Assembly: GCF_023055435.1 (NCBI RefSeq)
Contig: NW_025963957.1
Coordinates: 2,046,001 to 2,110,000 of the forward strand
DNA from: Haliotis rufescens
Lineage: Eukaryota
DNA: 64,000 bases
Direction: 5' to 3'
A program made the position numbers and the translations under genes. Under the pieces are notes generated by a model. It made no database searches. It had not been told where the DNA came from and saw only the letters and a program-made list of their open reading frames with translations. Positions 1,729 through 50,875 of this stretch are shown here, one piece after another. Numbering within the stretch: the first letter of the stretch is position 1; every line of letters begins with the position of its first letter.

Positions 1729-3965
1729 ATGGGAAAGGTATATATCTATATCTGATTTATTTCTTAGTAACGGCTTATACCTTGAAACATATTTTAGACT
1801 CAACTTATTGCGAGCATCCATCTTTGTGTAAATTTGCTGGCGCCGAATATTGTCAGCTTTATTATATTCTTAATGTGTGAGACTGTTAAGGTAAAGATAT
1901 CATTTTATCATTTTAGAAACAAGTGGCGCTATCCCTTTTCACTGTATATATAAATATATAAATATATGATTATAAGAAGTACTCTTTGCGTTTCAGTTTA
2001 TATACAACATCGCGGCGTTAGTCGGCCTCGTCGCCATGACGACGGCCCTCCCCCCTCTCCCCACTCCCGCCTGCTATTCCCAGCAACTTCTGTCGGACCA
2101 GAGCTTTGACCTCAGCTTTGTCTGCAACGACGGAAGACAATATCCCGAGTAAGTACATTTAGCTAGTTAGGAAACAATGGACAGGGCAGGTTGTTTACTG
2201 TTTGCTGTACGAATTTTCACAAATATATAAAATCAAATTATATTTACGTAAAGTCGAACTGTCTGATATATTCACACATCATTACACATCATGTACCTTT
2301 AAGTCGAATCACCGACATGCGTTTATGTTATAAGAGTTTTTGCACCGTTAAGTCGAAATGTTTATATAACATGTACCTCTAAGTGGCATTACCGACATGC
2401 GTTGATGTACCGTTAAGTCGAACTGTCTGACATTTCACTTGGTCTCCAGACAGGAGATCGAGGAGGCTCTGTACTACGCCGACGACCACTGGCGTATCTA
2501 CCTCAACCTGACATCCACCTGCTTCCAGGACCAGGACACCTACTTCATGAACAAACAGTAAGTAGCGCATTACAACGACCAGATAACGTTTGAGATAAAA
2601 ACAAACTACTTATCATGAGCATGTGTTTATGAATCAATATTTAAAAAATGATGGTACGAGATGTTCGCGAAATATTGAGCTTATCCTGCCCTATCGGTGC
2701 CACCCCTCACAAACACATGCAAAGGCAACTCAGTTGTTCAAACCTGAGAGCATATGGTACAATATCGTTAATCCGGACACGTCGCTTCCAATGAAATCGT
2801 CCGGTTAATGTATGTCCGGAAGAACGATATATGAGTTGGAAGTAATGTGATTCTGGTTGTAAGAAGTCATTAACAAAACTTGAGCCCGGAAAACGGGCTT
2901 CCGAAATAACAGGTGTTCACTATCTACTTTCAATGACTACATCTTTTATCATGTGGCGTGAAATATTGAGCCTATTTAGAAAGGGAGCACATACAAATAT
3001 TGTAGAATAATGTTCATTCCTCTATTCAGAGAAATGCTTCATGTAAACAAAATAACGTTACAGTATATCTTTTTATGTATATTTGAGGCCATGACTGATA
3101 TCAGTGAATTGCTGCAATTTGTGAATAAAACCATTATTTACATATATTCGTGAAACGTTATTATTGACCTTGACCTTGCAGCTCTGAGCCCAACTACTAC
3201 AAGTTGAAGAGCGTGTGCAACACCACTCGTACCATGGTGCACACCATCTATGCCATGGACGGTCAAGTCTGCCACGTTGTCCGCCCTATGTCCCAGAAAG
3301 TCTTCTACGCCACATGCGGGTAGGTACACGGCTATGTTTTTTAGATCGTTCATATTTGTTACAAAATTCATACACTAAAGTATACAGACGCTACGACATT
3401 AAACAAATAATTGTCGGAGTAGTTTATATATTTTTAACTTTCCAAGGGAACTCAAAGGTAACAAAAAAACCTGCCTTTATTGTGCCCATGCATTATTTAT
3501 ATATAAATAAAATACTAATGTCAGAGGTTATTAACACGGCAATAATATCAAGCTACACGTCGACACTTTAAGACTTCTAAAAATTATTTTTTAACCTCTC
3601 CGCTACTACTTGCATTACTAAATATGTCCTATTTGTTTTACAGAGGAGAATGTAACCTTGGTTACGACGGCGTGACCGGCTACCACTGCATTCAACGCGG
3701 CATCACCTACCGCAACTTCCTCGGTTACTGCCGTCTCCCCGACTCCGCAACCTTCCCAGAATCTTCCCCCATCTACGCTCTTGACCCCTCCGTCGACAAC
3801 TTCTACGACCCCCGTGTTGCCCCACCCACCCACCGCATGCAGCACAACCTCCTCAAGAGCGGGGGCCACTACAAACCCAAGGGCTACTTCACGGAGTTGA
3901 GCGTTACCCTCCCAAGCTACTGCGGCTGCAGGGGATATTTCTGCCCCCACGACAGGATTCTTTAG
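1729..3965 (+). CDS. Gene A copy 1: secreted Spaetzle-like cystine-knot protein, 242 aa
   Basis: Exons 1729-1737, 1997-2148, 2450-2557, 3182-3319, 3644-3965 (729 nt, GT-AG, phases 0,2,2,2). Protein: MGKFIYNIAALVGLVAMTTA|LPPLPTPACYSQQLLSDQSFDLSFVCNDGRQYPEQEIEEALYYADDHWRIYLNLTSTCFQDQDTYFMNKHSEPNYYKLKSVCNTTRTMVHTIYAMDGQVCHVVRPMSQKVFYATCGGECNLGYDGVTGYHCIQRGITYRNFLGYC...LSVTLPSYCGCRGYFCPHDRIL*. Hydrophobic signal peptide, CGGxC and CxC knot motifs, AATAAA at 4391-4396. Gene model is strong; the family label comes from motif recognition only. Confidence 0.88.
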
Positions 3966-8783: not shown

Positions 8784-11088
8784 TTACACAAACTGATACT
8801 TGAGACATTCGTATTTCTTACAGCTGCATCCGGTGGGGATGGTGACGCGGGTTCTGCGGCACTGCTTGATCTCGCCGGGACAGAAGACGTAGATATCACG
8901 TTCAACCATGCCGTCGGGGACGCAGTAGTGGTGTTTCACCTCCGTGGTGTCCATGACGCAGTGACCTCTAGAGAAAAGAAAAGGGATAACAAAATATGAT
9001 AAAATAATACTTTCAACGGAGAACTTTGCTTGTCTCGAACAGCTCCAATAACAAGCCTCAAATGTCTTCTAATGGTTTGATTTGTTGTTTTACGCCGCAC
9101 TCAGCAATATTCCAGCTATATGACGGCGGTCTGTATATAAATCGAGACTGGACCAGACAATCCAGTGATTTACAGCATGAGCATCGATACACGCAATCTG
9201 GGTCGATGACATGCATCAACCAAGTCAGCGAGCCCGACCACCCGATCCCGTTAGTTGCCTTTTACGACAAGCTCAGTCACCTTTTACGACAAGCATGGGT
9301 TGCTGAAGACCTATTCTACCCCGGATCTTCACGGGTTTGTATTCTAATAGCGTCGCAAAAACTATAAAGGCCATTTTGACATTCTGAAAAGTGTGTTATA
9401 GAATCAAACCCAAACAATGTAAAGATGTATAGCGCCTATATTGTTTAAGATCTGTTTTTCATTGAACTTTTGTTTTAAATATTCTAAAAAGAATCCCGAC
9501 CACTCTGAATTTGAAGGAAAACATTTATTACAAATACTGGTATATGAAAGCTGGATATGTTTGGTCAAGTTGACGAATGTGTGACGTACCCGCATTGAGC
9601 GACTTCAACTCCCTGGGCTTCAGGCATGATGACGTAGCAGACCTCTCGGCGCCCGTTCGCGGTGTTGGTCCACCAGATTCTCTCCAGGAGCTCGGTATTC
9701 TCGGAACACAGATCCTTGTATCGGTAGGCGGGGTAGTGGCTGGAATATACCACAAACATGGTTCAAACAGCTGCAGCATTATCATAATAGTATTGCGTTC
9801 TTGAATAAATAGCTGTGTGGATGGAGTTTGACGACGTGCTTCGGCAAAAGTCGACCCATATCACGGCGGTTTCTCGGAGTCCGCGGACGTTTAATCACTG
9901 GGCCACTCTATCGCCCTTTATACAAATGAATCAGATGGAACATGACAGATGACATCACAAATTCTGATTTCTCACCATTTAAAGTGATAATCATACGTCA
10001 TACCATAGTGAACAGGGCAGGAGACTTTATAACGAAGGTACTTTAGATGGATTTATGTAACAATGACCACCTTTGGTGAGTGAGTGTGTAAGTTTGGTTT
10101 AACGCCGCTTTGAACAGTATTTCAGATAAATTGCGAGGGGACAGCTTAATATGGGAGGGTAGCTCGAAGTGACGATGAAAGCTCCGATCACGGGTGATAA
10201 CTAGTAGCTAGGGTGGATCATCTGTACCTACCCGGTGGAGTTCATCTTGTTGTGGAGGTAGCATCCCTGCACCAGCAGCATGTACTCCATTGCGTCGGGG
10301 TCCTGTTCCAGGGCGCTGAACACACGGTCACTGGAACAACCAATAAAGCTCTTTGCAATTTCACCACATGGCATCTTAAACACGGGGGACCTAATGGACC
10401 CTTACAGATGTGACAAGCGATGGCATTTAAAACTTGGCTATGCTGTGTGACTGCCGGAACTAACTTTAGAGCATAAATGAAAATACTAAAGTATATTTTG
10501 GAAATAAGTATGACGAAAATTTGCCAAAACGACCAGAGCGTGTCTTTGAAAAGACTACATACACAGGGTATTTGTAGGACTTGTCGAAGCACAGCTTTTC
10601 CTTGGTAGGCCATTCGTACTGGGGGACGCCATTCTTGTCAAAATAGCAGATTGGCTGTTTGGTCTTGGCGGAGAGGGCGCTGAAGATGCTGGAACCGTCA
10701 CGGACGCGGGCACCAAACAAGGAAGACTTTCTGGATTTCAGAAGGCTAGCGAATCGGCTGGAGGTTGAGCCTCCCAAAGAACGCCCTCCGACAGGGGGTC
10801 GATTCCACGCCAAGGTGACGGCGGTGAGGGACATGAGAACGCATAATGTCACAAGAACTCTCTGGAAGAAATGAGAGACAGGGATTTTCATGAAATTGGT
10901 AAAACTGTATGTTAATTCTTATTTTTGTTTTATTTTAGGATTTGGAATATGTCAAAACTATTGCCGCTACTGCTGTTGACACACAACGTCGGGCTTTCCT
11001 CCCACATTAAGCTGACACGCCGTGGTATAACTTGAATACTGTTAAAAGCGGCGTTGAACCCAACTCACTCACTCACTCACTACTACTT

Positions 11089-11142
<54 letters not shown>

Positions 11143-11494
11143 GAAAAGCCATATTCACTCACTTTCTACTACCATACCATACTTCCTGCTCCTGCTACTA
11201 ATACTACAAATACTACGACTCGTATTATTAACTCTTTTCTCTCATATTTTAAAACCCCTAATTAATGATGTTGAATATTTTCATGCAAATTCAACAAGAA
11301 AGTATTTAATAACAATTCAGCATTTCAACCACTAATACGCAGTCAAGAACATATACTGCTTCTACTACTACTGCTACTTCTACCACTTCAACCAATATTT
11401 TTTTCACAACTGTAAAATAATGTTAAAAATGAACTCATTTAAATACTCAGCAAAAAACTGCCTTTAAAGACATCAGCATCGTACATACTTACAT

Positions 11495-11566
<72 letters not shown>

Positions 11567-11786
11567 GACGACGACGACGACGACGACTACGACGACTACG
11601 ACTACTAAAGTTTCTACTACAGCTACTACTAATACCAGTATTTTACACTGCCTGCTGCGAACGATGTTTACAATTCAGCTACAAGATAATATTAGATAGA
11701 ACATCTGTTAAAATACTGAGGCCTTAATAAACTGCTTTTCAAGACATTACAATCGTACACAGTTTGCAAAATATTCTACTTACCAT
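8784..11786 (-). CDS. Gene B copy 2: secreted Spaetzle-like cystine-knot protein, 244 aa
   Basis: Exons 11784-11786 (ATG), 10563-10861, 10232-10330, 9590-9739, 8784-8967 (735 nt, phases 0,2,2,2). Protein: MRVLVTLCVLMSLTAVTLA|WNRPP...QPICYFDKNGVPQYEWPTKEKLCFDKSYKYPVDRVFSALEQDPDAMEYMLLVQGCYLHNKMNSTGHYPAYRYKDLCSENTELLERIWWTNTANGRREVCYVIMPEAQGVEVAQCGGHCVMDTTEVKHHYCVPDGMVERDIYVFCPGEIKQCRRTRVTIPTGCSCKKYECLKYQFV*. Candidate - strand AATAAA at 8270-8275. Confidence 0.88.
9073..9336 (-). mobile_element. Family 1 SINE-like insertion in B2 intron 4
   Basis: Absent from B3 intron 4 (~19215); TTCTAAT occurs near both ends. Confidence 0.8.
11080..11141 (+). repeat. (CTA)n microsatellite in B intron 1; further CTA/CGA tracts at 977-1060, 11496-11607, 21096-21180
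   Basis: Direct trinucleotide repeats; source of the poly-Leu ORFs in the track. Confidence 0.95.
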
Positions 11787-11844
11787 ATTTACAAACAAAG
11801 GACCTGTCTATATTAAAATAGTTACTGTAGCTGTGTACAGCGAT

Positions 11845-12100
11845 GGCTGACTTGCTGGGAGCTGAAGCTCGCTTTTATTCCCTCTCGATTCGGAAGGAGG
11901 AGCATATTTCAGCCAATCAGAAGTGGCGTTTTTGATTGAATGCCTTTGACGTCACGCGGCAACACTTCTTCCTGAAAACAATGGCGGCAGTGGATGACGT
12001 ACCTACGTCAAACACTTTGATTGACAACTGTCACGTGACAAGAGGGCAGGGAACGAGTCGAGAGTATATAAGGTGACACTGGCCCAGTCTAAGCCAGCGA
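11845..12100. promoter_or_regulatory. Bidirectional promoter between B2 (-) and A2 (+)
   Basis: TATA-like (-) 11872-11879; CCAAT 11911-11919; TGACGTCA 11947-11954; inverted half-CRE pair TGACGTA-CC-TACGTCA 11995-12010; GTCACGTGAC 12030-12039; TATATAAG 12065-12072. Confidence 0.7.
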
Positions 12101-12142
12101 CTGTGAACACCTCAAGAACTGAGCTTCACACATCATACTACC

Positions 12143-14489
12143 ATGGGAAAGGTATATATCTATATCTGATTTATTTCTTAGTAATGGCTTATACCTTGAA
12201 ACATATTTTAAACTCAACTTATTGCGAGCATCCATCTTTGTGTAAATTTGCTGGCGCCGAATATTGTCAGCTTTACTATATTCTTAATGTGTGAGACTGT
12301 TAAGGTAAAGATATCATTTTATCATTTTAGAAACAAGTGGCGCTATCCCTTTTCACTGTATATATAAATATATAAATATTTGATTATAAGAAGTACTCTT
12401 TGCGTTTCAGTTTATATACAACATCGCGGCGTTAGTCGGCCTCGTCGCCATGGCGACGGCCCTCCCCCCTCTCCCCACTCCCGCCTGCTATTCCCAGCAA
12501 CTTCTGTCGGACCAGAGCTTTGACCTCAGCTTTGTCTGCAACGACGGAAGACAATATCCCGAGTAAGTACATTTAGCTAGTTAGGAAACAATGGACAGGG
12601 CAGGTTGTTTACTGTTTGCTGTACGAATTTAATAAATATATAAAATCAAATTATATTTACGTAAAGTCGAACTGTCTGATATATTCACACATCATTACAC
12701 ATCATGTACCTTTAAGTCGAATCACCGACATGCGTTGATGTTATAAGAGTTTTTGCACCGTTAAGTCGAAATGTCGATATATGTTCAGTTTGTATGACAT
12801 AACATGTACCTTTGAGTCGAATGTACATGTTATAAGAGTTAGTGTACCGTTAAGTCGAACTGTCTGACATTTTCACTTTGGACTATATAACATGTACCTC
12901 TAAGTGGCATTACCGACATGCGTTGATGTACCGTTAAGTCGAACTGTCTGACATTTCACTTTGTCTCCAGACAGGAGATCGAGGAGGCTCTGTACTACGC
13001 CGACGACCACTGGCGTATCTACCTCAACCTGACATCCACCTGCTTCCAGGACCAGGACACCTACTTCATGAACAAACAGTAAGTAGCGCATTACAACGAC
13101 CAGATAACGTTTGAGATAAAAACAAACTACTTATCATGAGCATGTGTTTATGAATCAATATTTTAAAAATGATGGTACGAGATGTTCGCGAAATATTGAG
13201 CTTATCCTGCCCTATCGGTGCCACCCCTCACAAACACATGCAAAGGCAACTCAATTGTTCAAACCTGAGAGCATATGGTACAATATCGTTAATCCGGACA
13301 CGTCGCTTCCAATGAAATCGTCCGGTTAATGTATGTCCGGAATAACGATATATGAGTTGGAAGTAATGTCACTCTGGTTGTAAGAAGTCATTAACAAAAC
13401 TTGAGCCCGGAAAACGGGCTTCCGAAATAACAGGTGTTCACTATCTACTTTCGATGACTACATCTTTTTATCATGTGGCGTGAAATATTGAGCCTATTTA
13501 GAAAGGGAGCACATACAAATATTGTAGAATAATGTTCATTCCTCTATTCAGAGAAATGCTTCATGTAAACAAAATAACGTTACAGTATATCTTTTTATGT
13601 ATATTTGAGGCCATGACTTATATCAGTGAATTGCTGCAATTTGTGAATAATACCACTATTTACATATATTCGTGAAACGTTATTATTGACCTTGACCTTG
13701 CAGCTCTGAGCCCAACTACTACAAGTTGAAGAGCGTGTGCAACACCACTCGTACCATGGTGCACACCATCTATGCCATGGACGGTCAAGTCTGCCACGTT
13801 GTCCGCCCTATGTCCCAGAAAGTCTTCTTCGCCACATGCGGGTAGGTACACGGCTATGTTTTTTAGATCGTTCATATTTGTTACAAAATTCATACACTAA
13901 AGTATACAGACGCTACGACATTAAACAAATAATTGTCGGAGGAGTTTATATATTTTTAACTTTCCAAGGGAACTCAAAGGTAACAAAAAAACCTGCCTTT
14001 ATTGTGCCCATGCATTATTTATATATAAATAAAATACTAATGTCAGAGGTTATTAACACGGCAATAATAACAAGCTACATGTCGTCACTTTAAGACTTCT
14101 AAAAAATATTTTTTAACCTCTCCGCTACTACTTGCATTACTAAATATGTCCTATTTGTTTTTTACAGAGGAGAATGTAACCTTGGTTACGACGGCGTGAC
14201 CGGCTACCACTGCATTCAACGCGGCATCACCTACCGCAACTTCCTCGGTTACTGCCATCTCCCCGACCCCGCAACCTTCCCAGAATCTTCCCCCATCTAC
14301 GCTCTTGACCCCTCCGTCGACAACTTCTACGACCCCCGTGTTGCCCCACCCACCCACCGCATGCAGCACAACCTCCTCAAGAGCGGGGGCCACTACAAAC
14401 CAAAGGGCTACTTCACGGAGTTGAGCGTTACCCTCCCCAGCTACTGCGGCTGCAGGGGATATTTCTGCCCCCACGACAGGATTCTTTAG
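12143..14489 (+). CDS. Gene A copy 2: secreted Spaetzle-like cystine-knot protein, 242 aa
   Basis: Exons 12143-12151, 12411-12562, 12971-13078, 13704-13841, 14168-14489; intact frame. Visible differences from A1: MTTA/MATA, VFYAT/VFFAT, CRLPDS/CHLPDP. AATAAA 14915-14920. Confidence 0.88.
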
Positions 14490-18932: not shown

Positions 18933-21093
18933 TTACACAAACTGATACTTGAGACATTCGTATTTCTTACAGCTGCATCCGGTGGGGATGGTGACGCGAG
19001 TTCTGCGGCACTGCTTGATCTCGCCGGGACAGAAGACGTAGATATCACGTTCAACCATGCCGTCGGGGACGCAGTAGTGGTGTTTCACCTCCGTGGTGTC
19101 CATGACGCAGTGACCTCTGGAGAAAAGAAAAGGGATAAAAAAAAATATGAAAAATAATACTTTCAACGGAGAACTTTGCTTGTCTCAAACAGCTCCAATA
19201 ACAAGCCTCAAATAAATTCTAATACCGCCGCAAAAACTATGAAGGCCATTTTGACATTCTGAATAGTGCGTTATAGAATCAAACCCAAACAATGTAACGA
19301 TGTATATTGCCTATATTGTTTTTTTATTATTCCCTAAATATAAATAAGAAAATAAGAACTGTGTTTATTGAACTTTTGTTTTAAATATTCTAAAAAAATC
19401 CCGACCACTCTAAATCACAAATACTGGTATATGAAAGCTGGACATGTTTGGTCAAGCTAATTGTGTGACGTACCCGCATTGAGCGACTTCAACTCCCTGG
19501 GCTTCAGGCATGATGACGTAGCAGACCTCTCGGCGCCCGTTCTTGGTGTTGGTCCACCAGATTCTCTCCAGGAGCTCGGTGTTCTCGGAACACAGATCCT
19601 TGTATCGGTAGGCGGGGTAGTGGCTGGAATATACCACAAGCATGGTTCAAACAGCTGCAGCATTATCATGATAGTATTGCGTTCTCGAATAAATAGCTGT
19701 GTGGCTGGAGTTTGACGACGTGCTTCGGCAAAAGTCGACCCATATCACGGCGGTTTCTCGGAGTCCGCGGATGTTTAATCACTGCGCCACTCTATCGCCC
19801 TTTATACAAATGAATCAGATGGAACATGACAGATGACATCACAAATTCTGATTTCTCACCATTCAAAGTGATAATCATACGTCATGCCACAGTGAAGAAG
19901 GCAAGAGACTTTATAACGAAGGTACTTTAGATGGATTTATGTAACAATGACCACCTTTGGTGAGTGATTGTGTGAGTTTAACGCCGCTTTGAACAGTATT
20001 TCAGATATAGTGCGAGGGGACAGCTTAATATGGGAGGGTGGCTCGAAGTGACGATGAAAGCCCCGATCACGGGTGATAACTAGTAGCTAGGGTGTATCAT
20101 CTGTACCTACCCGGTGGAGTTCATCTTGTTGTGGAGGTAGCATCCCTGCACCAGCAGCATGTACTCCATTGCGTCGGGGTCCTGTTCCAGGGCGCTGAAC
20201 ACACGGTCACTGGAACAACCACGTTAACATTACTGTCAGCCTTCTCATACACTATGGTGTACAGACAACAGTAGAACTTACAGTGTGAACACACGGTCAC
20301 TGGAACAACCAATAAAGCTCTTTGCAATTTCACCACATGGCATCTTAAACACGGGGGACCTAATGGACCCTTACAGATGTGACAAGCGATGGCATTTAAA
20401 ACTTGGCTATGCTGTGTGATCGCCTGAACTAACTTTAGAGCATAAATGAAAATACTAAAGCATATTTTGGAAATAAGTATGACGAAAATTTGCCAAAACG
20501 ACCAGAGCGTGTCTTTGAAAAGATTACATACACAGGGTATTTGTAGGACTTGTCGAAGCACAGCTTTTCCTTAGTTGGCCATTCGTACTGGGGGACGCCA
20601 TTCTTGTCAAAGTAGCAGATTGGCTGTTTGGTCTTGGCGGAGAGGGCGCTGAAAATGCTGGAACCGTCACGGACGCGGGCACCAAACAAGGAAGATTTTC
20701 TGGATTTCAGGAGGCTAGCGAATCGGCTGGAGGTTGAGCCTCCCAGAGAACGCCCTCCGACAGGCGGTCGATTCCACGCCAAGGTGACGGCGGTGAGGGA
20801 CACGAGAACGCATAATGTCACAAGAACTCTCTGGAAGAAATGAGAGAAAAGGATTTTCATGAAATTGGTAAAACTGTATGTTAATTCTTATTTTTGTTTT
20901 ATTTTAGGATTTGGAATATGTCAAAACTATTGCCGCTACTGCTGTTGACACACAACTGCTTCTACTACTACTGCTACTTCTACCACTTCAACCAATATTT
21001 TTTCATAACTGTAAAATAATGTTAAATATAAACTCATTTAAATACTCAGCAAAAAACTGCCTTTAAAGACATCAGCATCGTACATACTTACAT

Positions 21094-21138
<45 letters not shown>

Positions 21139-21361
21139 GACGACGACGACGACGACGACGACTACGACGACTACGACTACTAAAGTTTCTACTACAGCTA
21201 CTACTAATACCAATATTTTACACTGCCTGCTGCGAACGATGTTTACAATTCAGCTACAAGATAATATTAGATAGAATATCTGTTAAAATACTGAGATCTT
21301 AATAAACTGCTTTGCAAGACATTACAATCGTACACAGTTTACAAAATATTCTACTTACCAT
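18933..21361 (-). CDS. Gene B copy 3: secreted Spaetzle-like cystine-knot protein, 244 aa (250 aa if the candidate micro-exon is included)
   Basis: Exons 21359-21361, 20532-20830, 20111-20209, 19474-19623, 18933-19116; intact frame. Differences from B2 include VLMSL/VLVSL and TNTANG/TNTKNG. Confidence 0.88.
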
Positions 21362-21419
21362 ATTTACAAACAAAGGACCTGTCTATATTAAAATAGTTAC
21401 TGTAGCTGTGTACAGCGAT

Positions 21420-21547
21420 GGCTGACTTGCTGGGAGCTGAAGCTCGCTTTTATTCCCTCTCACCTCGGAAGGAGGAGCATATTTCAGCCAATCAGAAGTG
21501 ACGTTTTGCTTGAGTGCCTCTGACGTCACACGGCTACACTTCTTCCT
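21420..21547 (-). promoter_or_regulatory. B3 promoter (B-proximal half of the bidirectional promoter only)
   Basis: TATA-like 21447-21454, CCAAT 21486-21494, extra TGACG 21499-21503, TGACGTCA 21521-21528. Similarity to the other units stops at ~21547; no E-box, A-side TATA or gene A follows. Confidence 0.6.
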
Positions 21548-21993
21548 TTGCATTACCTCATTGCTTGACAGTTACCCTGTTAATCAATCAAACTCGGTGA
21601 AATTTACAATTATATTTGACGCAAGCGATTAACAATAAGCAAGAACATTGTCCTTCGGACAAAGTCGGCAGAAGACAAATGTCATTCAATGCTAATTCCG
21701 TTAATCTTGTCGAGGGTTTCTGAGGTCGTCATAGGTATGACGCTGATGTGTACAAATACGCGTTTCAATTTAAATATGTCCTATCCAAACACTAGATATA
21801 TTTGAATTTGTTTATTATTTGAAACATAAGTATTACAAATTTTAAAAAACAACAACTCCTCTTTGCTTCATATGTACGACTTGGTCTCTTTCAATGATAA
21901 ACTGTGACATTTTCTTTACATGTGCTACATGGGCAGCATGTGTATAAAGAGTTTGTTTGTATGTACTCACTATATTTCATGTCATAAACACCA

Positions 21994-22353
21994 GACCGCC
22001 TCCGTGGTCTAGTGGTAGAGCGTCCACCCGGAGAGCGGAAGGTCCGGGGTTCGATCCCCGACCGCGTCATACCAAAAGACGTTAAAAGATAGTACTTGTT
22101 GTTACCCTGTCTGGCGCTCGGCATTAAGGGGCTAAAACAAGGACTGGTCGGCTCGAGTCAGTATACTGTGTCTGAGTGGGGTATTCATGTTAAAACTGCG
22201 GCATGGTATCACAGTGAGCTAGCACTATAAATCGGCTTCAGTCCGGACTAGTACAAGCAGCCACACACAAACACACACACGTACATGCACGTCGCTATAT
22301 AAGTGCAATAACCTTGGACGCGACGTTAAAACCTCATTTCACCTCACCTCACC
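21994..22353 (+). mobile_element. Full-length tRNA-derived SINE, family 2 (Meta/MESC-like core)
   Basis: A box GTGGTCTAGTGG, B box GGTTCGATCCC, core GTCATACCAAAAGAC...CCCTGTCTGGCGCTCGGCATTAAGGG, (CACCT)n tail, 12-bp TSD TCATAAACACCA (21982-21993 / 22354-22365). Confidence 0.9.
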
Positions 22354-22472
22354 TCATAAACACCATAAGTAGGTAATAATTTTCAAATCAGATTAATTCA
22401 GATATTGTTGCAAGTGCTGAAACAACACATATACATATTGTGTAAATCAAAGAACAAACTCATAATAATGTA

Positions 22473-26663: not shown

Positions 26664-27008
26664 GGTGTGAAATTTGGTTTAACGTCGCGTCCAAGATTAT
26701 TGCACTTATATAGCGACGTACATGCACGTGTATGTGTGTGGCTGCTTGTACTAGTCCGGACTGATGCCGATTTATAGTGCTAGCACACTGAGATATCATG
26801 CCGCAGTTTAACATGGACACCCCACTCAGACACAGTATATTGACTCCGAGCCGACCAGTCCTTGTTTTAGCCCCTTAATGCCGAGCGCCAGACAGGGTAA
26901 CAACAAGTACCATCTTTTAACGTCTTTTGGTATGACGCGGTCGGGGATCGAACCCCGGACCTTCCGCTCTCCGGGCAGACGCTCTACCACTAGACCACGG
27001 AGGCGGTC
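26664..27008 (-). mobile_element. Full-length family 2 SINE
   Basis: Reverse complement of 21994-22353; CTTGTTAGA repeated at 26655-26663 and 27011-27019. Confidence 0.88.
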
Positions 27009-28669: not shown

Positions 28670-29525
28670 AAAGTCACAAGCACGTGTATGTTTATAGTAT
28701 CTGTGAAAGCCACAAGCAGGGGTGTGTCTATAGTATCTGTGAAAGCCACAAGCAGGGGTATGTTTATAGTATCTGTGAAAGTCACAAGCAGGGGTATGTT
28801 TATAGTATCTGTGAAAGTCACAAGCAGGGGTATGTTTATAGTATCTGTGAAAGTCACAAGCAGGGGTATATTTATAGTGTCTGTGAAAGCCTCAAGCATG
28901 GTATGTTAATAGTATCTGTGAAAGTCACAAGCAGGGATATGTCTATAGTATCTGTGAAAGACACAAGCAGGGGTATGTTTATAGTATCTGTGAAAGTCAC
29001 AAGCAGGGGTATGTTTATAGTATCTGTGAAAGTCACAAGCAGGGGTATGTTTATAGTATCTGTGAAAGTCACAAGCAGGGGTATGTTTATAGTATCTGTG
29101 AAAGTCACAAGCAGGGGTATGTCTATAGTATCTGTGAAAGTCACAAGCAGGGGTATGTCTATAGTATCTGTGAAAGTCACAAGCAGGGGTATGTTTATAG
29201 TATCTGTGAAAGTCACAAGCAGGGGTATGTCTATAGTATCTGTGAAAGTCACAAGCACGGGTATATTTAAAGTATCCGTGAAAGCCTAAAGCATGGTATG
29301 TTTATAGCATCTGTAAAAACCACAATCAGGATATGTTTATAGTGTATGTGGAAGTCACAAGCACGGGTATATTTATAGTATCTGTGAAAGTCACAAGCAG
29401 GGGTATATTTATAGTGTCTGTGAAAGCCTCAAGCATGGTATGTTTATAGTATCTGTAAAAACCACAAGCATGGTATGTTTATAGTATTTGTGAAAGCCAC
29501 AAGCACGAGTCTGTTTATAGTATCT
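28670..29525 (+). repeat. 36-bp minisatellite (GTATCTGTGAAAGTCACAAGCAGGGGTATGTTTATA)n, ~23 copies
   Basis: Direct tandem repeats; a shorter related array lies at ~31400-31630. Confidence 0.95.
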
Positions 29526-29685
29526 TTATAAGTGAATATTAACGAACATGCTTACTAATTCATAACGATGTGCTTTGATGCAATATTATGTATATATTTT
29601 GTACATATCATCTATGTACATGCTAAATATATACATGTATGGAAGCCTATTAGTGCCATATTCTAAAAAAGTAAATATCATCATC

Positions 29686-30585
29686 GAAGATGATACCGCT
29701 CACATCGTCGTAGATGATACCGCTCGAATCGTCGTAGATGATACCGCTCACATCGTCGTGGGTGATACCGCTCACATCGTCGTAGATGATACCGCTCACA
29801 TCGTCGAAGATGATACCGCTCACATCGTCGTGGGTGATACCGCTCACATCGTCGTAGATGATACCGCTCACATCGTCGTAGATGATACCGCTCACATCGT
29901 CGTAGATGATACCGCTCACATCGTCGTGGATGATACCGCTCACATCGTCGTAGATGATACCGCTCACATCGTCGTAGATGATACCGCTCACATCGTCGTG
30001 GATGATACCGCTCACATCGTCGTGGATGATACCGCTCACATCGTCGTAGATGATACCGCTCACATCGTCGTAGATGATACCGCTCACATCGTCGTGGGTG
30101 ATACCGCTCACATCGTCGTAGATGATACCGCTCACATCGTCGTAGATGATACCGCTCACATCGTCGTAGATGATACCGCTCACATCGCCGTAGATGATAC
30201 CGCTCACATCGTCGTAGATGATACCGCTCACATCGTCGTGGATGATACCGCTCACATCGTCGTAGATGATACCGCTCACATCGTCGTAGATGATACCGCT
30301 CACATCGTCGTGGATGATACCGCTCACATCGTCGTGGATGATACCGCTCACATCGTCGTAGATGATACCGCTCACATCGTCGTAGATGATACCGCTCACA
30401 TCGTCGTAGATGACACCGCTCACATCGTCGTGGGTGATGCCGCTCACATCGTCGAAGATGATACCGCTCACATCGTCGTAGATGATACCGCTCACATCGT
30501 CGTGGATGATACCGCTCACATCGTCGTAGATGATACCGCTCACATCGCCGTAGATGATACCGCTCACATCGTCGTAGATGATACA
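29686..30585 (+). repeat. 24-bp minisatellite (GATGATACCGCTCACATCGTCGTA)n, ~37 copies
   Basis: Direct tandem repeats with few variants. Confidence 0.97.
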
Positions 30586-32039
30586 TTCATCTACGTATAT
30601 CATATTATAATCTTCGTAGAATAAGATATCATCAACTATCGAACAATATATCACTATGTGAGTAACCATACTCACGATAATAATATCATATACGCAGATG
30701 AAAGTGTATGCATTTCTTATGTATTTATTGTTGAATAAAATATATAGTGATAGGAAAAATGAAATATGAAAGACAATGCAAATACGTTTTGTTTCTTCTC
30801 TTAATGAGGAAGTAAATATGCCCGTCCCTCAGCCATGTTTATGAACACGGCACTAGCGACTAATGTCCGATTATATCGAGACGCAATAGTTTATGAACAG
30901 TTTAAATCATATTGAGGTAAAGAGTTTTTCTTTTCTTTCACACATATTTATGTTAGGCCATGTATGATGTGGATTCATAAACTCATGTTCATGGTATAGT
31001 AGGAATCGTAAATCGACTCTGCTTATGCAGATATCCTATTGAATATGGAAAGGTTATATTGTCGCTTTACTTATTGGATGCGTTGTCTTGGCAAGCGATG
31101 GATGCGCCAGTACAATCCCACTACAAACAATCAGGTTCGGAGGAGTTATCTCCCATTATTTTTGGAATCGCATCACCATCTGAATGCACGAAATGAAGTT
31201 TTTTGTTCGCGACAGATACAGGCATATGTACTGCAAAACTAAATACCTTAAAAAGACATCAAGCTTTAGACACACAGCAAGGAAACGATGATAGTGTAAC
31301 GCCGCTTTAAAGTATATATTAGTTATATTTGCGTGTCAGGCTGTTAGCTATATGTTGGAGTAGACACGAACGCAGGTTGTAGACGTTTGTAGCCTTAGTG
31401 AAAGCCACATGCATGGGTATGTTTATAGTATCTGCGAAAGTCACAAGTAGGGTATGTTTATAGTATCTGTGAAAGACACAAACATCGGTATGTTTATAGT
31501 ATCTGTGAAAGACACAACATCGGTATGTTTATAGTATCTGTGAAAGACACAAACATCGGTATGTTTATAGTATCTGTGAAAGCCACAAGCATCGGTATGC
31601 TTTATTATTAAATATGAAAGCCACAAGCACTGGTATAGTGCTGACACAAATGACGAGGATCGGGACGAATCTTGGATCCTTACAAGGCTAAGGGACAAAA
31701 CACTGTAGGACGAATCCAACGTAGAACACCTTCTGAGCGGCGTCCCCGTTTTCGAAAGATAAATATGATACATAATCATCTGTACATGTGCACCATGATG
31801 ACATTCCCGGTACGACTGTTTTGTTTGTCTGCTGTTTAAAGGGAGCACATCAAGTAATGCTGTTTGTTTGTTGTTTAACGCCGCACTCAGAAATATTCAA
31901 GCTGTAAATAATCGAGTCTGGACCAGACAATCCAGTGATTGGCAACGATCAACGACGTCGGGGTCGACACGGGGTCAACCAAGTCTAGCCTAAAAACCCG
32001 ATCCAGTACGTCTCCTCCTACGACCAGATAGCAGGAATC

Positions 32040-34541: not shown

Positions 34542-36302
34542 TCATGAATTCCGTGAAATTAACCCATCCTCCGCCTTCGCATTTACAGCAACGAAGGGCA
34601 GCTTCGTGTCCATCATTCCCCGTCCGCCATACTCCCCCTTCCTCGCCATGTCACTCATGTAAGTCTTTTCCCGCGTCAGAGTCTGTTCCTGCCTCAACGA
34701 CAGACGAACAGGATCATGGGACCGTCTGGGCGGCAACACGACCTCATAACTGTCTGCTGGTGATTCCCTTGGAAGGCTAACCGTCACTTTCCTTGAATTT
34801 GGTTTACTTGAGGTGTCGGAATCCCATGAAATGTCTCTGACAGAGTATTGTGAATCTGACTCTCGCTCGTTCAACTCAACCGAGGAGTCTTCCACGCACA
34901 AAGAAGCGGTCCTAAAATCCCGAGCATTCTTCCTCCACGGGTCGTCCTCTTTACTTTCGTCGTTTTCGGAATCGTTGGTGAAGTCGGACATACTAGGCAG
35001 TCTAATCACACCTTCACTGACAACGTCTTTGGATTTGGCTTTTGAGGATTTAGTGGTTTTGAGTTCTGACTGTGTTGACCCTGCACGTTTGTTGGGAAGT
35101 CGATACTGAAATTTAGCAAAACGTTCCCCTTGCCGTGAGTGTGAGTAGGCTGGGGCAGGGGAACAACTGTTTCTCATCGAGTCCGTTTCATCCTCATCCC
35201 TGGAACACCCCGTAATGAGCAAACGTTTATGAGCGGACGAGATGGGATGAGTCTGTTTACTGTGTGTAACATGGGTAAACTCGTCTGCGTTCGGTGCCAT
35301 CGTCAAGAAACGATGTAGACGAAACTCTCGCGTGGTTTTGAAGGAAGAACGGTTAGCACTTTCAGAAGATCTCGTTACATCATCTACATCTCGTTTTGGT
35401 CTCTGAACACGTTTCTTTATCACTGGAGTGGTTGGATTGATGGATGTGAAAGGTACACTGGTAACCTCTCTCCTGAACGGTAACATAGGAGGAAAATTTA
35501 CATCCTTCATCGTATCGCCAGAGTCCCTCAGGGCGATTTTAGAAGGCGACGTGGTTGGATATCCACTCTGAACACGGCGTTCAATCTTCTTTGGACTCTG
35601 AACAGGAGGTTCTGCCTCTTTTGTTTGTAGAAATCGAATGACTTGTTTAATGTTTAGCTTATCTGGGTCGTTGTCGTTGATGGGAGTTGTACTTCTCGGT
35701 AGCTGGTTCACATTTAACTTATATTTCTTATTTTTCTTATTGTCCTTCCCAAACCCGTCTCTATGTTTCTGAATCTCCATCTCCCCTGGTGTCAAGGTAA
35801 CCGATCTCCAGAAACCATTCTGGGACATGAAGTACCGCCCGTCCAGCGCCTTACAGGGGGACGGCTTTGGGAGAACCTTAACAGTCTTCGGAACATCTAT
35901 GGTGGACAAACTATCACTTGAGCCCGGAGATTCAGAAGGTTCAGGAGTTCTAATCACAATTCGATTATTCACGGTATTCACACTTTCTGTCGTTACTAAC
36001 GTGTCTTTAACACGGGAATTATACTCCGATCGTGCGCGCTGGGGAGGAGCAGTGATCGCAGGTGAGGGATGTTCTCTAGGCTTTCGTTCTGAGGACACAC
36101 GACGAGGTTTGGCGTCATACCTCCGGCCATGTGTTCTCGTGACGGCCAGGGTGGGGAATCCCCTAGCTTGACCATACACTCGAGCGCTGTCAACGTGTAG
36201 AGTAGCGGACTGGGATGCATTGTTGCTGGAAAAGGGCATCAGCTGCAGAACGGTCGGTTGCCAGTTGTCAGTCATCAAAATGGCGGCACTCATCTTGTCC
36301 AT
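34542..36302 (-). CDS. Hypothetical protein, 586 aa, Ser/Pro/Arg/Lys-rich and probably largely disordered; coding region in one exon
   Basis: 1761-nt non-repetitive ORF, more GC-rich than its flanks, in-frame upstream TGA. Candidate 5' intron: acceptor TTTGCAG ending at 36524, donor GTGAGT at 37114. No domain recognised; start codon uncertain. Confidence 0.8.
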   Translation of the reverse strand: MDKMSAAILMTDNWQPTVLQLMPFSSNNASQSATLHVDSARVYGQARGFPTLAVTRTHGRRYDAKPRRVSSERKPREHPSPAITAPPQRARSEYNSRVKDTLVTTESVNTVNNRIVIRTPEPSESPGSSDSLSTIDVPKTVKVLPKPSPCKALDGRYFMSQNGFWRSVTLTPGEMEIQKHRDGFGKDNKKNKKYKLNVNQLPRSTTPINDNDPDKLNIKQVIRFLQTKEAEPPVQSPKKIERRVQSGYPTTSPSKIALRDSGDTMKDVNFPPMLPFRREVTSVPFTSINPTTPVIKKRVQRPKRDVDDVTRSSESANRSSFKTTREFRLHRFLTMAPNADEFTHVTHSKQTHPISSAHKRLLITGCSRDEDETDSMRNSCSPAPAYSHSRQGERFAKFQYRLPNKRAGSTQSELKTTKSSKAKSKDVVSEGVIRLPSMSDFTNDSENDESKEDDPWRKNARDFRTASLCVEDSSVELNERESDSQYSVRDISWDSDTSSKPNSRKVTVSLPRESPADSYEVVLPPRRSHDPVRLSLRQEQTLTREKTYMSDMARKGEYGGRGMMDTKLPFVAVNAKAEDGLISRNS

Positions 36303-46500: not shown

Positions 46501-47774
46501 TCAAAGGGTTCGGTGCAATCAACTTGAGTACTCAACGTGGCAACCACTCTACTCTGAAGCCTCGTATATCTAGTAGTTTCACGAATAGCTTCTTCAAGAT
46601 TTGTTTCTTCATGATAAAAGTCTTAGTAACTAAAATACATGTTTGCACGTGTGTACAGGCTTCAGCGCAACGTTGTGATTAAAGTTTAATATCACATATA
46701 TTGTAAATCATAGCCACAATGGAGTTCATTGTCTCGTACGTAGTCAATTTGAAGTTTAATCACTCAAATCTGTTTTGGGATATCTAAAGATCGATTTGGT
46801 GAAAAAGCAATAATCATATTAAACACAGAAAACACATTTTTTTATATAATCTGTGGTCACTTGACGAAGAAACATGACTCTCATGGTGAGTGAGAGAATT
46901 TTGTTCAACGCCGCAGTCAACACTATTCAAGCTGTATCGCTACGGGCTGTAAAAAATCGAGTCAACCGATGGATGATATTTTGAACAACGTCCTACGCCG
47001 TCGGGGCATGATGACGCCTGAGTCGCCGAGCCTGACCACCTGATCTATAGTCGCTTCTTTGGTCAAGCATATAATTGCTACCTGGGGACTACTTATATCC
47101 CGAAATTCAAACCGAGTTGGTCCAATTATAAACCATTACTTAATACATCTACATCAAGTATGCATAACTCTGTCGACTTTTAGAAAACAATACAGCCATG
47201 ATCATAATGAGAAATAAAAACAAGGAAAGCCATATTGACTCTGTTTCCATCAGTGACAAAGTATTTTATCTCGGTCACGTGAACTAACAAAATCTCAACA
47301 TTCTGACATGGGGGTAAGATAATAAGTGATGTCTGATGCAATTCCCTATTTTGACTTGTACCATATGTTCAGTGTTTCTTCATGTGAATAACCGACTTGC
47401 CTTTGCATGTGTTTGTGACGATTGCCACCGGTGGAGCAGGATACGCTCATCCCTGGTCTCATTACGTTTTGAAAGTGATTCATGAACATATAGTTATCAT
47501 ACAGTCGGAACCGCATAATGGTTTAAAAAAGGGTTTTGTCGCTTTTATTTGAAGAATACTCGATTCTGACTGGTTATGCAGGATATTCAGTTCCCGGCCC
47601 TGGTCAATCACGTAACAACACTATTAAACTGCTGGGTAAAAGAAAGTATACACCCATGTTTGACGGTGGCTAAAAGAGAAACAAACAAGAAACGGTTATT
47701 CGTGGGTTGTGTATTTCATACGGGTATCATAGTTGTGTTTTGGACTTTTAAGTCGACTATGTTCAGCCGAATAA

Positions 47775-48129
47775 GACCGCCTCCGTGGCCTAGTGGTAGA
47801 GCGTCCGCCCGGAGAGCGGAAGGTCCGGGGTTCGATCCCCGGCCGCGTCATACCAAAAGACGTTAAAAGATGGTACTTGTTGTTACCCTGTCTGGCCCTC
47901 GACATTAAGGGGCTAAAACAAGGACTGGTCGGCTCTGAGTCAGTATACTGTGTCTGAGTGGGGTATTCATGTTAAACTGCGGCATGGTATCTCAGTGAGC
48001 TAGCACTATAAATCGGCATCATTCCGGACTAGTACAAGCAGCCACACACACACACACGTGCATGCACGTCGCTATATAAGTGCAATAATCTTGGACGCGA
48101 CGTTAAACCCAATTTCACCTCACCTCACC
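47775..48129 (+). mobile_element. Full-length family 2 SINE
   Basis: A and B boxes, (CACCT)n tail, 12-bp TSD TCAGCCGAATAA (47763-47774 / 48130-48141). Confidence 0.9.
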
Positions 48130-50875
48130 TCAGCCGAATAACGTTTTGATAACGTTTGTATGTTTTAAGTTAAATCCATTTTTCAAGTGTATCCTTTCTT
48201 TTGCCCGGCAGTTTACTTTCAATGATGACTATAACGATATACTTTGTACACACAGTAGGATACATATCTTAACAGTAAGGTCGCGACACGATACAAGGTA
48301 CTCAACCTTTGTGATGCAAGAATATATACTCCATCATCCAGGGAAATGAATGAAGCCCAACCAAAACATATTTAGTAGATCTAAATTATTAATGAAAAGT
48401 TGGCTGAAACCTTTTGTACATACCGACAGTAATTAACATTTTACAATTACCTTTAATTAAAAAACAATATAACCCTAAAATACACTTGCACTGTTTTGCA
48501 TAAATATTATGAATCGTTACATCCCTAGCGCCATTAAGGGTGTATCATGAGGAAGTGATTTCAGTTAAATGCCACATTGATCAGCATTTCAGTTTGTCAA
48601 GGTGTGTCAGCTTAATCAGTGAGAAACACCTGAAGTAGTGCAGGTCTTGGATGTTTACCACTCTCGTGAAACCCACGAGCATGTGTGTGGAATGCTGACA
48701 AATCAGTCATCTTAATCAGAGCGAATCTGGGATTCGAACCAACGATTATAGGATTCTGAGACGTGAAAGACGCATCTCTGACAGCGAATCGCGACGACTC
48801 AAACACCTAACGGTTGACGCTAAATCTAGATTAACTACCTGTTGACCGAATGTAGAAATTTCTTCCCACTGCTAACGCATAACCCACAAAATGGTAATTA
48901 CTTTTACATCGAAAAGTGTGTAATCATGAACCAAAATAAATGACAAATAGCAAATATAATATTTTTTCATGATTTGCAGCAGGAAGAGGCGTTATTTGTT
49001 TCTCATCCAATATCGGCGAATCGTTGATCTCGTACGCACAATCCCCATTGATGTCAAGAGTTTGACAGAGAGGCCGGAGAAGCCAAGACGTGGACTGTGT
49101 GATCACTTAACTCTCTAATGTAGGGTTGACGACAGGTCACCAAATGTCCGTCTCTTAATCAATGAAAATGGTATTTCGGGTTGGGATCTGTTTATTATTA
49201 CATTACCTTTCACGTGCTCCAACATTATTTTATCATAAAAACAATATACATTTATGATGGACACAATATAGGAATTGTCATGAAAATGAAATAGGCTATA
49301 TATGGAACTGCTCCTGTCAATGTAACGAATGCAAATTTCATGAGGGAGAGTGTGAGACGAAACTATACCATTGTTAACGGACTACTGTAACGATACTTTA
49401 TGTGTCGGTGAAAGGTAGATATTCAGTTTGCAAGTACAGTCTCATTAACTAGCTCAGTAACATACATCTTTAGGTACAATGACAAATATGTTCCTCAAAA
49501 CGTACAGTTTTGTACTGTTCAATACCACAATTATTTTAGATCCATATTCCTGAGGATGTGAACAGACATGACTATTCTTAATGAAATGTTTACAATGTGA
49601 TTGCTTTATGTAAAGCTATGTATTTTACGCTGCAAAATATAATCTAAAGTTGTTATATAGTTGTTTATTTTGGGTGTGGTTCCGTTCACCCAATGCACTT
49701 ACCTTATCGAATAGTATTATCACCTAGCTGTATCCAATACGACACCTTGAGTCACAGATCATTGTTCAAAACAGCCAATTAATGAAGTATCGTGATGTGT
49801 TTTCACGCCGTTCGACAAAAATACGAGGACAGGTCATACAGTTTGGAAACATCATTGCAAAACGTCATGTATTGACAATAATGCCGGGAATAGTACACTC
49901 ATATCGAGTGACAGACATTCAGGTTCGTCAAAGCTGCAAACTCGCAATTAATGCATGTGTGGCAGGTGACAACGGACACCCGGAGCGCCAAAGTAAGTGT
50001 AACAGGTGCTTATTATTTATTAACACCTTGCTGGTATATGTCTCCCCTGACATCTATATTCTCATCTATTAGCAGGTGGTGATAACGAGAACATTGATTC
50101 ATCAGAACATGTCCACAGCCCCTCTGGGTAAGCAATACAATGGATATTAAAACTTTAGGACTGAATCAGCAACGAGTCACAGAAGTATCAAAGCCTATCT
50201 ATCGACAAGGAGATCATGCACAGATACGGCATTGTTCATGGGAGTACGGTACACCCTTCAAAAGGCCCAGGCGTACCTTTATTAAACTTAGAGTGCCTAC
50301 CAGAATACTTTTGATCCATTTTCAAACTTTGTGAATGTCATTGTACCCAGAGCTTGTAATATGTACTTTATCCGCTAGCATTTCCTTGAGACAGATAATA
50401 CCCTTTTCAATTGCATGTATAGGGCTTGAACTAGTAACTGCGTTTTTATAATACCAGTCAATTTGTGCGAAAGTACATTCACCACATGAATCATCTGTCC
50501 ACGGGATGAATTCGTTGTGTTTGTATCTTGTTTAAAGACGCATGCAGCTATATGACGACGGTCTGTAAATAATCGAATCTGGACCAGACAATCCAGTGAC
50601 TGACATCATGGGCATCGATCTAAGCATTAATCTGACCATCCTGTCTTGTTATTCGGTTCATCAAGCATTTGTTGCTGGAGACTAATTCTTTCCCGGACCT
50701 TGTCGCCCTGATATAACTGGGTAGCAACATACCCGTGGCAGTGGGATTACGCCAGGTGCTTGAGCCTGCATCACCTTGTGCACTCTTCCCACACTGAGCT
50801 GATACAGACATACTGTTCAACGCGGCATCAAATACAAGTCACCAACACATACCCATCAATTGTCCATGAGTTGAG

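Follow-up and report, generated by a model that had tools for sequence, protein, structure and literature searches.

Knot cytokines usually dimerise. The genes of IL-17A and IL-17F are linked paralogues whose products, secreted knot cytokines, form homodimers as well as heterodimers, while bursicon and GPA2/GPB5 are knot heterodimers. Coagulogen is the NGF/Spaetzle-type knot protein of horseshoe-crab clotting. C-x3-C together with C-x-C makes the 8-membered ring of the TGF-beta, DAN and glycoprotein-hormone knots, and the ring of NGF and Spaetzle is larger. Here we analysed a 64,000-nucleotide stretch of the abalone Haliotis rufescens, referred to as the window (RefSeq assembly GCF_023055435.1, contig NW_025963957.1, positions 2,046,001 to 2,110,000 of the forward strand), which contains two genes placed head to head, gene A on the minus strand (8784-11786) and gene B on the plus strand (12143-14489). 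A first-pass annotation had read them as Spaetzle-like cystine-knot paralogues and as candidates for the two subunits of a ligand or secreted complex, expressed together from one shared promoter. We consider it probable that the spacer between A and B is instead the seam of a four-unit [B> <A] tandem array, left by the first duplication, and that the two genes are ancient paralogues of an unnamed, mollusc-only family of secreted knot proteins.

The models of both genes were rebuilt from the window. Gene A consists of five exons encoding 244 amino acids (aa), of which exon 1 (11784-11786) is the ATG alone, followed by GTAAGT, and exon 2 (10563-10861) encodes the signal peptide, an A-specific disordered stretch with three SSxF..basic repeats, the first two conserved Cys and a YP motif. 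Exon 3 (10232-10330) encodes a helical N-subdomain, recognised from the window and from an AlphaFold2 (AF2) model, exon 4 (9590-9739) the first half of the knot, ending TGC GG, and exon 5 (8784-8967) the second half (GHC...CSC...C) with the stop at 8784-8786. Gene B, also of five exons, encodes 242 aa, with MGK in exon 1 (12143-12151), the signal peptide, first two conserved Cys and YP in exon 2 (12411-12562), the helical N-subdomain in exon 3 (12971-13078), the first half of the knot, ending TGC GG, in exon 4 (13704-13841), and the second half, a B-specific Pro-rich loop of about 46 aa, CGC...C and the stop in exon 5 (14168-14489). All eight introns are GT-AG, with phases 0,2,2,2 in each gene. 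Intron 2 lies directly past YP in A and B alike, intron 3 (phase 2 in both) falls at positions matching within one aligned residue, and intron 4 interrupts, in both, the codon for the first Gly of CGGxC. The motifs C-x5/6-YP-x3-[IV]-x2-AL, VC-x-V-x2-P-x2-Q-x-V, CGGxC and P-x2-CxC-x4-C are present in each protein. The divergent five-exon pair with equal phases, matching intron positions and shared motifs that the first-pass annotation described was therefore recovered, as were its signal peptides, one in exon 2 of each gene, and the products are of secreted type.

The joined translations are identical in every letter to H. rufescens RefSeq proteins XP_046365412.2 for A (P0013, LOC124141439) and XP_046365416.2 for B (P0018, LOC124141442), both named only "uncharacterized protein", and it is on agreement with the RefSeq models that the splice junctions given here rest. 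The two proteins share 25% identity over 120 aa (BLASTP, pairwise E 8e-10) and 12 aligned Cys columns. The ATG-only exon 1 of gene A is intact in all four A copies of the H. rufescens genome and the gene models of the four annotated Haliotis species all use it. Within A intron 1, an alternative ATG in the same frame (10891) is where one H. cracherodii model (P0011) starts, and either start codon leads to the same signal peptide core and the same mature protein.

A family-profile search of the 1.33-Gb assembly found exons of this family on contig C179 only (2,024,090-2,065,682), bar a weak match, unverified and with five stops, on contig C446 (E 1.1e-4). The genes form one array (C179:2,024,090-2,067,547) in the strictly alternating order B A B A B A B A, with four B genes on the plus strand and four A genes on the minus strand, in agreement with the RefSeq set of H. 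rufescens, which has four proteins of each type. The pair under study is one of three head-to-head junctions of the same type in this four-unit array, and comparison of the window with itself gave units of about 10 kb at 94-98% identity. The previous unit is represented in the window by the 5' part of a gene A copy, A0 (78-1391, minus; ATG 1389-1391, exon 2 558-856, exon 3 78-176), the rest of which lies left of the window, and by a full gene B copy, B0 (1729-3965, plus), with exons 99-100% identical to those of B. The last gene of the array is a full gene A copy, A2 (18933-21361, minus), with no B beyond it and with array homology ending at 21547. The four copies of each gene have exons of 97-100% identity, except for one copy of B exon 2 at 90%, and the promoter halves are 90-97% identical between copies, unpaired end genes included, whereas in the older units the introns either align at 75-90% identity or do not align. 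Judged from this comparison of exons and promoters with introns, the eight genes and their short proximal promoters are under constraint or have been homogenised by conversion.

Alignment of the three spacers with the two ends of the array showed how the head-to-head layout arose. Upstream of A2, the gene furthest to the right, the sequence matches the spacer from the A ATG to the window equivalent of position 11973, with unrelated sequence beyond, and upstream of the leftmost B, unrelated sequence gives way to homology that extends from about 11979 to the B ATG. The two breakpoints meet within five bases, at the string CTTCTTCCT GAAAA CAATGGCGG (junction at 11974-11978), which is identical in all three head-to-head spacers. 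Because the ends of the array break at 11973 and 11979, this confirmed that the duplicated unit is a convergent cassette [B> <A], that is [11979 ... B> ... <A ... 11973], and that the 356-bp spacer separating the two ATGs (11787-12142) is the duplication junction. The A-side half of the spacer (11787-11973, 187 bp) is the upstream flank of A, in which a TATA-like run occupies 11809-11818 of the minus strand, a CCAAT box lies at 11913 and the cyclic AMP response element (CRE) TGACGTCA at 11947, and the same half stands upstream of the unpaired end copy A2 (21362-21547). The B-side half (11979-12142, 164 bp) is the upstream flank of B, with a half CRE at 11995, an E-box CACGTG at 12032 and TATATAAGG at 12065, and it also stands upstream of the unpaired leftmost B.

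These results do not bear out the old shared promoter that had been proposed for the pair: the spacer is a duplication seam, the three spacers measure 588, 337 and 356 bp, and the genes at both ends are unpaired and own only their own half. The ancestral, conserved head-to-head layout that identifies a bidirectional promoter was not found at this locus. The 588-bp spacer, in the second unit of the array, carries a 227-bp AT-rich insertion (C179:2,035,318-2,035,544) about 30 bp to the B side of the seam, where the alignments on either side overlap by 6 bp, a hint of target-site duplication.

The range of the family was examined by searching an A+B profile against 1.84 billion representative proteins in a library clustered at 50% identity. 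This returned 14 hits, 12 of them true family clusters, molluscan or unlabelled. All named members from this search are molluscs, namely Haliotis (A and B), Lottia gigantea, Gigantopelta aegis, Patella caerulea, Pomacea canaliculata, Solemya velum with two genes, and Mytilus species; the few remaining matches are unlabelled metagenome or Logan sequences, and members from Littorina, Nucella and Batillaria were added by a word-indexed search. No family member found carries a functional name. Only B-type sequences were recovered from caenogastropods and only A-like sequences from bivalves, an absence that is soft, since the library is clustered at 50% identity. Within Haliotis, A is 89-99% identical among species.

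Pfam searches, in which exons were searched singly and the identical RefSeq proteins served for full length, gave no significant match for the eight A and B exon translations or either full-length protein and no consistent one for 27 family members; the only sub-threshold signals on exons were Sclerostin (E 0.01, A exon 5) and SAA (E 0.13). None of the Spaetzle, IL-17 and DAN models, which the first-pass annotation had named for comparison with the pair, scored above cut-off, and neither DAN (PF03045) nor Cys_knot (PF00007) matched any member of the family. Sequence-profile searches of the PDB with the family alignments gave nothing even at E 10. In the literature we found no mention of twelve accessions or locus names of the family, nothing relevant linking abalone with Spatzle, and no proteomic or expression report under the family accessions. 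On these searches, A and B belong to a small mollusc-only family, present in gastropods and bivalves, that is part of no described family. Two published candidates were considered and set aside as unrelated: the Achatina protein CRASP, which is all-alpha with five disulfides (PMC4596865), and the limpet mucus proteome, which contains only large, CTCK-containing mucin-like proteins (PMC7333891).

Twelve Cys are aligned across the family. After the signal peptide, A has 13 Cys and most Haliotis B copies have 12. The 13th Cys of A, Cys220 in the last loop, is present in A-type and bivalve members; B-type members are without its equivalent and have a Pro-rich insertion in its place, 46 aa long in Haliotis, and B-type members outside Haliotis have a different 13th Cys two residues ahead of the Cys aligned to A Cys145.

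In a maximum-likelihood tree, which contains long branches, Haliotis A grouped with Gigantopelta, Patella and one unlabelled sequence (support 99/96) and Haliotis B with Lottia and the caenogastropods (85/88), with the second Solemya gene sister to the latter group (96/90) and the first Solemya gene and Mytilus outside both. Forcing A and B into a single Haliotis clade, a grouping chosen after the tree had been seen, cost 70.6 log-likelihood units and was rejected by the approximately unbiased (AU) test (p 1.6e-33). By this tree, the duplication that separated A from B is older than crown gastropods, because both clades hold patellogastropods and vetigastropods. The description of the two genes as old paralogues kept in linkage is thus upheld by the groupings and the AU test.

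Gene A also carries repeats of several kinds. Residues of about 20-70 (window 10700-10805) form a disordered N-terminal stretch found only in A-type proteins, which in Haliotis contains three repeats of about 12 aa of the form SSxF(A/G/S)..(K/R), here SSRFASLLKSRK, SSLFGARVRD and SSIFSALSAKTK, and a motif resembling FFSSL is found again in Gigantopelta and in one unlabelled A-type sequence. This stretch may be a processed propeptide or a source of small peptides. Intron 1 of A contains long (CTA)n and (CGA)n trinucleotide microsatellites (11063-11142 and 11482-11600) that vary in length between array copies. Introns 3 and 4 carry copies of an interspersed repeat resembling a short interspersed nuclear element (9060-9340 and 10060-10200), with further copies at 21993-22356, 26667-27008 and 47774-48132, at 80-95% identity.

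An AF2 model of A was built on an alignment of 27 sequences; a Haliotis-only alignment gave a predicted local distance difference test (pLDDT) score of just 36. On the larger alignment, pLDDT exceeded 90 for most of residues 90-235, which form two helices (101-109 and 112-131) followed by long beta-hairpins, among them long paired strands (192-212 and 220-235) that for the most part score near 90 or higher. Foldseek matched the model to IL-17A, sclerostin and coagulogen at E of about 1e-2 and probabilities of 0.9-0.99 (0.98-0.99 for IL-17A and SOST). In a structural search independent of Foldseek, run against 48,161 chains with 44 matches listed at Z of at least 2, cystine-knot proteins made up all of the top 25 and most of the 44. 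Coagulogen ranked first (Z 5.8 over 127 residues, helices and knot), followed by IL-17A (Z 5.3), sclerostin (SOST; Z 4.8, 24% identity over 83 aa), gremlin (Z 4.6), IL-25 (Z 4.5), noggin (Z 4.5 over 120 aa including the N-terminal part), NGF (Z 4.4), the CTCK domain of VWF (Z 4.0), norrin (Z 3.4-3.5), PTTH (Z 3.5), VEGF (Z 3.4) and PDGF (Z 3.3), with Spaetzle at rank 25 (3e07, Z 2.8; 7b1c, Z 2.3). The many IL-17A and IL-17F chains on the Foldseek list scored Z 5.0-5.6 over about 105 residues (of 110). A and B both have CGGxC and CxC at aligned positions, and the language-model neighbours of both proteins were Spaetzle, NGF, Noggin and IL-17 clusters at 0.90-0.92, which we took as a lead only.

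The model supports the placement of A and B, at the level of fold, in the cystine-knot cytokine and growth-factor superfamily, because knot proteins are near-exclusively enriched among the matches and the Cys motifs fit, not because of one strong match. This agrees with the knot fold first proposed for the pair from its motifs. The part of the proteins that had been called a prodomain fared differently. From about residue 90 onward, the model places the YP motif, Cys92, Cys124 and both helices with confidence in a subdomain that packs against the knot; confidence is low around Cys73, the first of the conserved Cys. No basic cleavage site was seen between N-subdomain and knot in the sequence of A or B. 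Given this packing and the lack of a basic site, it is more likely that the helical N-subdomain belongs to the mature protein, as in coagulogen or noggin.

Taken together, the array-end breakpoints and the common junction string indicate that the ancestral Haliotis locus would have been a convergent B> <A pair. A first tandem duplication would have joined the A flank (about 187 bp) to the B flank (about 164 bp), creating the 356-bp spacer once, and later duplications would have copied the head-to-head spacer. Because the spacer consists of two separate upstream flanks, each gene would most likely be driven by its own short proximal promoter, the two now standing back to back. The products may be extracellular, disulfide-stabilised and probably dimeric ligands, like their structural neighbours, and amplification of the cassette would raise the dose of both genes at a fixed 1:1 ratio.

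Several points weigh against this account. Start sites and promoter use are inferred from sequence, and a start of A near the TATA-like run would leave a very short leader ahead of the ATG-only exon. The Z scores of the structural matches are all below 6, and the search tool rates anything below 8 as middling; disulfide pairing is not readable from the model, and the central ring residue is Gly in Haliotis and Thr in several relatives (CGTNC, CRTNC, CNTHC), so that the ring is not a strict CxGxC. The functions suggested for A and B are likewise entirely inferred.

It is doubtful that A and B make up an obligate heterodimeric ligand, one subunit each, with a shared bidirectional promoter that exists to match their expression. 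The pair does consist of old paralogues that are still adjacent and co-amplified 4:4, but a 1:1 copy ratio is the trivial outcome of duplicating a two-gene unit. The layout itself speaks against such a promoter, since the spacer is a duplication seam and not ancestral, differs in length by unit with one copy tolerating 227 bp of inserted DNA so near the seam, and is reduced to a single half at both end genes, the exons of which are still intact. A complex prediction of A residues 70-244 with B residues 26-242 gave weak support (0.51, against 0.00 for the best of three controls). Of 78 solved complexes, 51 attained that mark, as did 2 of 108 mismatched pairs; with scores of at most 0.60, it was attained by only 5 of the 78, and by all 4 of the mismatches that passed. 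The runs agreed in at least 66% of contacts, with partner pLDDT of at least 57, but the test is blind to which family member binds, and A:A or B:B would probably score alike. IL-17A/F offers a precedent for heterodimers of linked paralogues, and PDB 5n92, which we take to be the IL-17A/F heterodimer, is among the structural matches of A. The Cys counts argue against a covalent heterodimer, as the number in A is odd, owing to the extra Cys220, and that in Haliotis B is even, leaving no spare Cys in B; this parity suggests that A could form a covalent homodimer. The recovery of B-type sequences alone from caenogastropods and A-like sequences alone from bivalves, soft as that absence is, also counts against an obligate pairing. 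A variant that allows for the seam, in which A and B would be the two chains of a mollusc-specific heterodimeric knot cytokine or hormone, amplified as a cassette for 1:1 dose, with the seam working secondarily as a bidirectional promoter, seems to us unlikely.

It is quite unlikely that A and B are abundant secreted structural or antagonist proteins, either a coagulogen-like component of clot or mucus or a DAN/noggin-like ligand trap, amplified for bulk output. Four near-identical copies of each gene would suit such a role, as would the top match to coagulogen over helical part and knot, with sclerostin, gremlin and noggin close behind. There is also a weak signal from the Sclerostin model of Pfam (PF05463), which scored 16 bits in A exon 5 against a cut-off of 27 and picked up 2 of the 27 family members, neither better than E 0.03. 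Against this stand the conservation of A among Haliotis species, an amino acid sequence of the last exon that is the same in all four A copies, and the literature search described above, in which no proteomic or expression report appeared under any family accession.

Very divergent membership of the IL-17 family is very unlikely. IL-17A and IL-17F supplied the most numerous and near-best structural matches, over nearly the whole of the aligned chain, but coagulogen, sclerostin, noggin and NGF lie within 1 Z of them. The human IL-17 spacing is C-x4-C, against C-x3-C in A and B. The IL17 model of Pfam (PF06083) matched 52 loci in the genome, all of them outside the array, and did not match any of the 27 family members. 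Invertebrate IL-17s include complete-knot types that keep the full three-disulfide knot, and the family is expanded in molluscs, some of which have more than 10 IL-17s (PMC11087794). In H. rufescens, the IL17 matches found in six-frame translation (at least 52) are in many cases densely clustered (C57:34.09-34.64 Mb, C512:0.78-1.0 Mb, C192 and C451), a large IL-17 expansion apart from the array.

The original assignment to the Spaetzle family, by which A and B would be Toll ligands made as pro-proteins and activated by cleavage, is most unlikely: a share of 12-43% Pfam Spaetzle members in the language-model neighbour clusters and the top match to coagulogen, itself a knot of NGF/Spaetzle type, speak for it, but the Spaetzle model (PF16077) matched neither full-length protein and only one of 27 members (E 0.15), the corresponding hidden Markov model (HMM) searched in six frames over the whole genome had no match in the array and none over cut-off anywhere, the two Spaetzle structures ranked under 24 other knot proteins, the ring is C-x3-C plus C-x-C, and the N-subdomain is packed on the knot with no basic site between them.

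Other features of the window lie outside the paired genes. A 24-bp minisatellite of about 38 copies (29679-30584, also 28670-29525 and 31398-31636) reads on the minus strand as an open frame of IIYDDVS(A/G) repeats, and 36-bp arrays adjoin it. A repeat peptide of the same IIYDDVS(A/G) type is the N-terminus of one H. cracherodii A model (P0009, 359 aa), probably because the annotation wrongly fused the minisatellite with the last A gene. The longest open reading frame (ORF) of the window, 586 aa uninterrupted (34542-36302, minus), had no Pfam match and may be a single-exon gene or a frame derived from an element; the long ORFs elsewhere in the window had no Pfam match either.

Molluscs have few defined extracellular signalling ligands, and the A/B family would add a compact, strongly conserved, mollusc-only branch of the knot superfamily that domain libraries do not recognise, with two subtypes coexisting since before the gastropod radiation. 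Abalones are farmed and partly endangered, and the apparent constraint on all eight copies makes it very likely that the A and B proteins matter, with possible roles in immunity, wound response, growth or reproduction. The single whole-genome array of four alternating B and A genes each and the duplication junction at the head-to-head spacer go beyond the first-pass annotation. The locus is a clean example of how tandem duplication of a convergent pair makes look-alike "bidirectional promoters", and it calls for caution in reading co-regulation from layout alone.

Compared with known systems, A and B share with Spaetzle and the neurotrophins the cystine-knot superfamily, a neighbourhood in language-model space and the NGF structural match, and differ from Spaetzle in its low Z score, in the absence of an HMM match, in ring size and in the activation cleavage site, which is not evident in A or B. 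With DAN, sclerostin, gremlin and noggin, the Haliotis proteins share a ring of C-x-G-x-C plus C-x-C, although the middle Gly is not conserved across the A/B family and the Pfam scores are below cut-off. Coagulogen (Tachypleus, PDB 1aoc) is the best whole-model match to A, at a root-mean-square deviation of 4.5 between model residues 80-236 and chain residues 1-175, and resembles A and B in being a secreted protein with many disulfides and a helical segment before the cystine knot. It is a chelicerate protein, whereas the A/B family is mollusc-only; its identity to A is 12%, the Coagulin model of Pfam has no match to the family, and coagulogen is cut at two Arg sites to polymerise, sites that are not evident in A or B. 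IL-17A and IL-17F match A over nearly the whole IL-17 chain. The A/B family is set apart from both by its 12-13 Cys, complete C-x3-C/C-x-C ring and additional helical N-subdomain; as secreted products of linked paralogues, IL-17A and IL-17F are the closest precedent for the idea that A and B might form a heterodimer.

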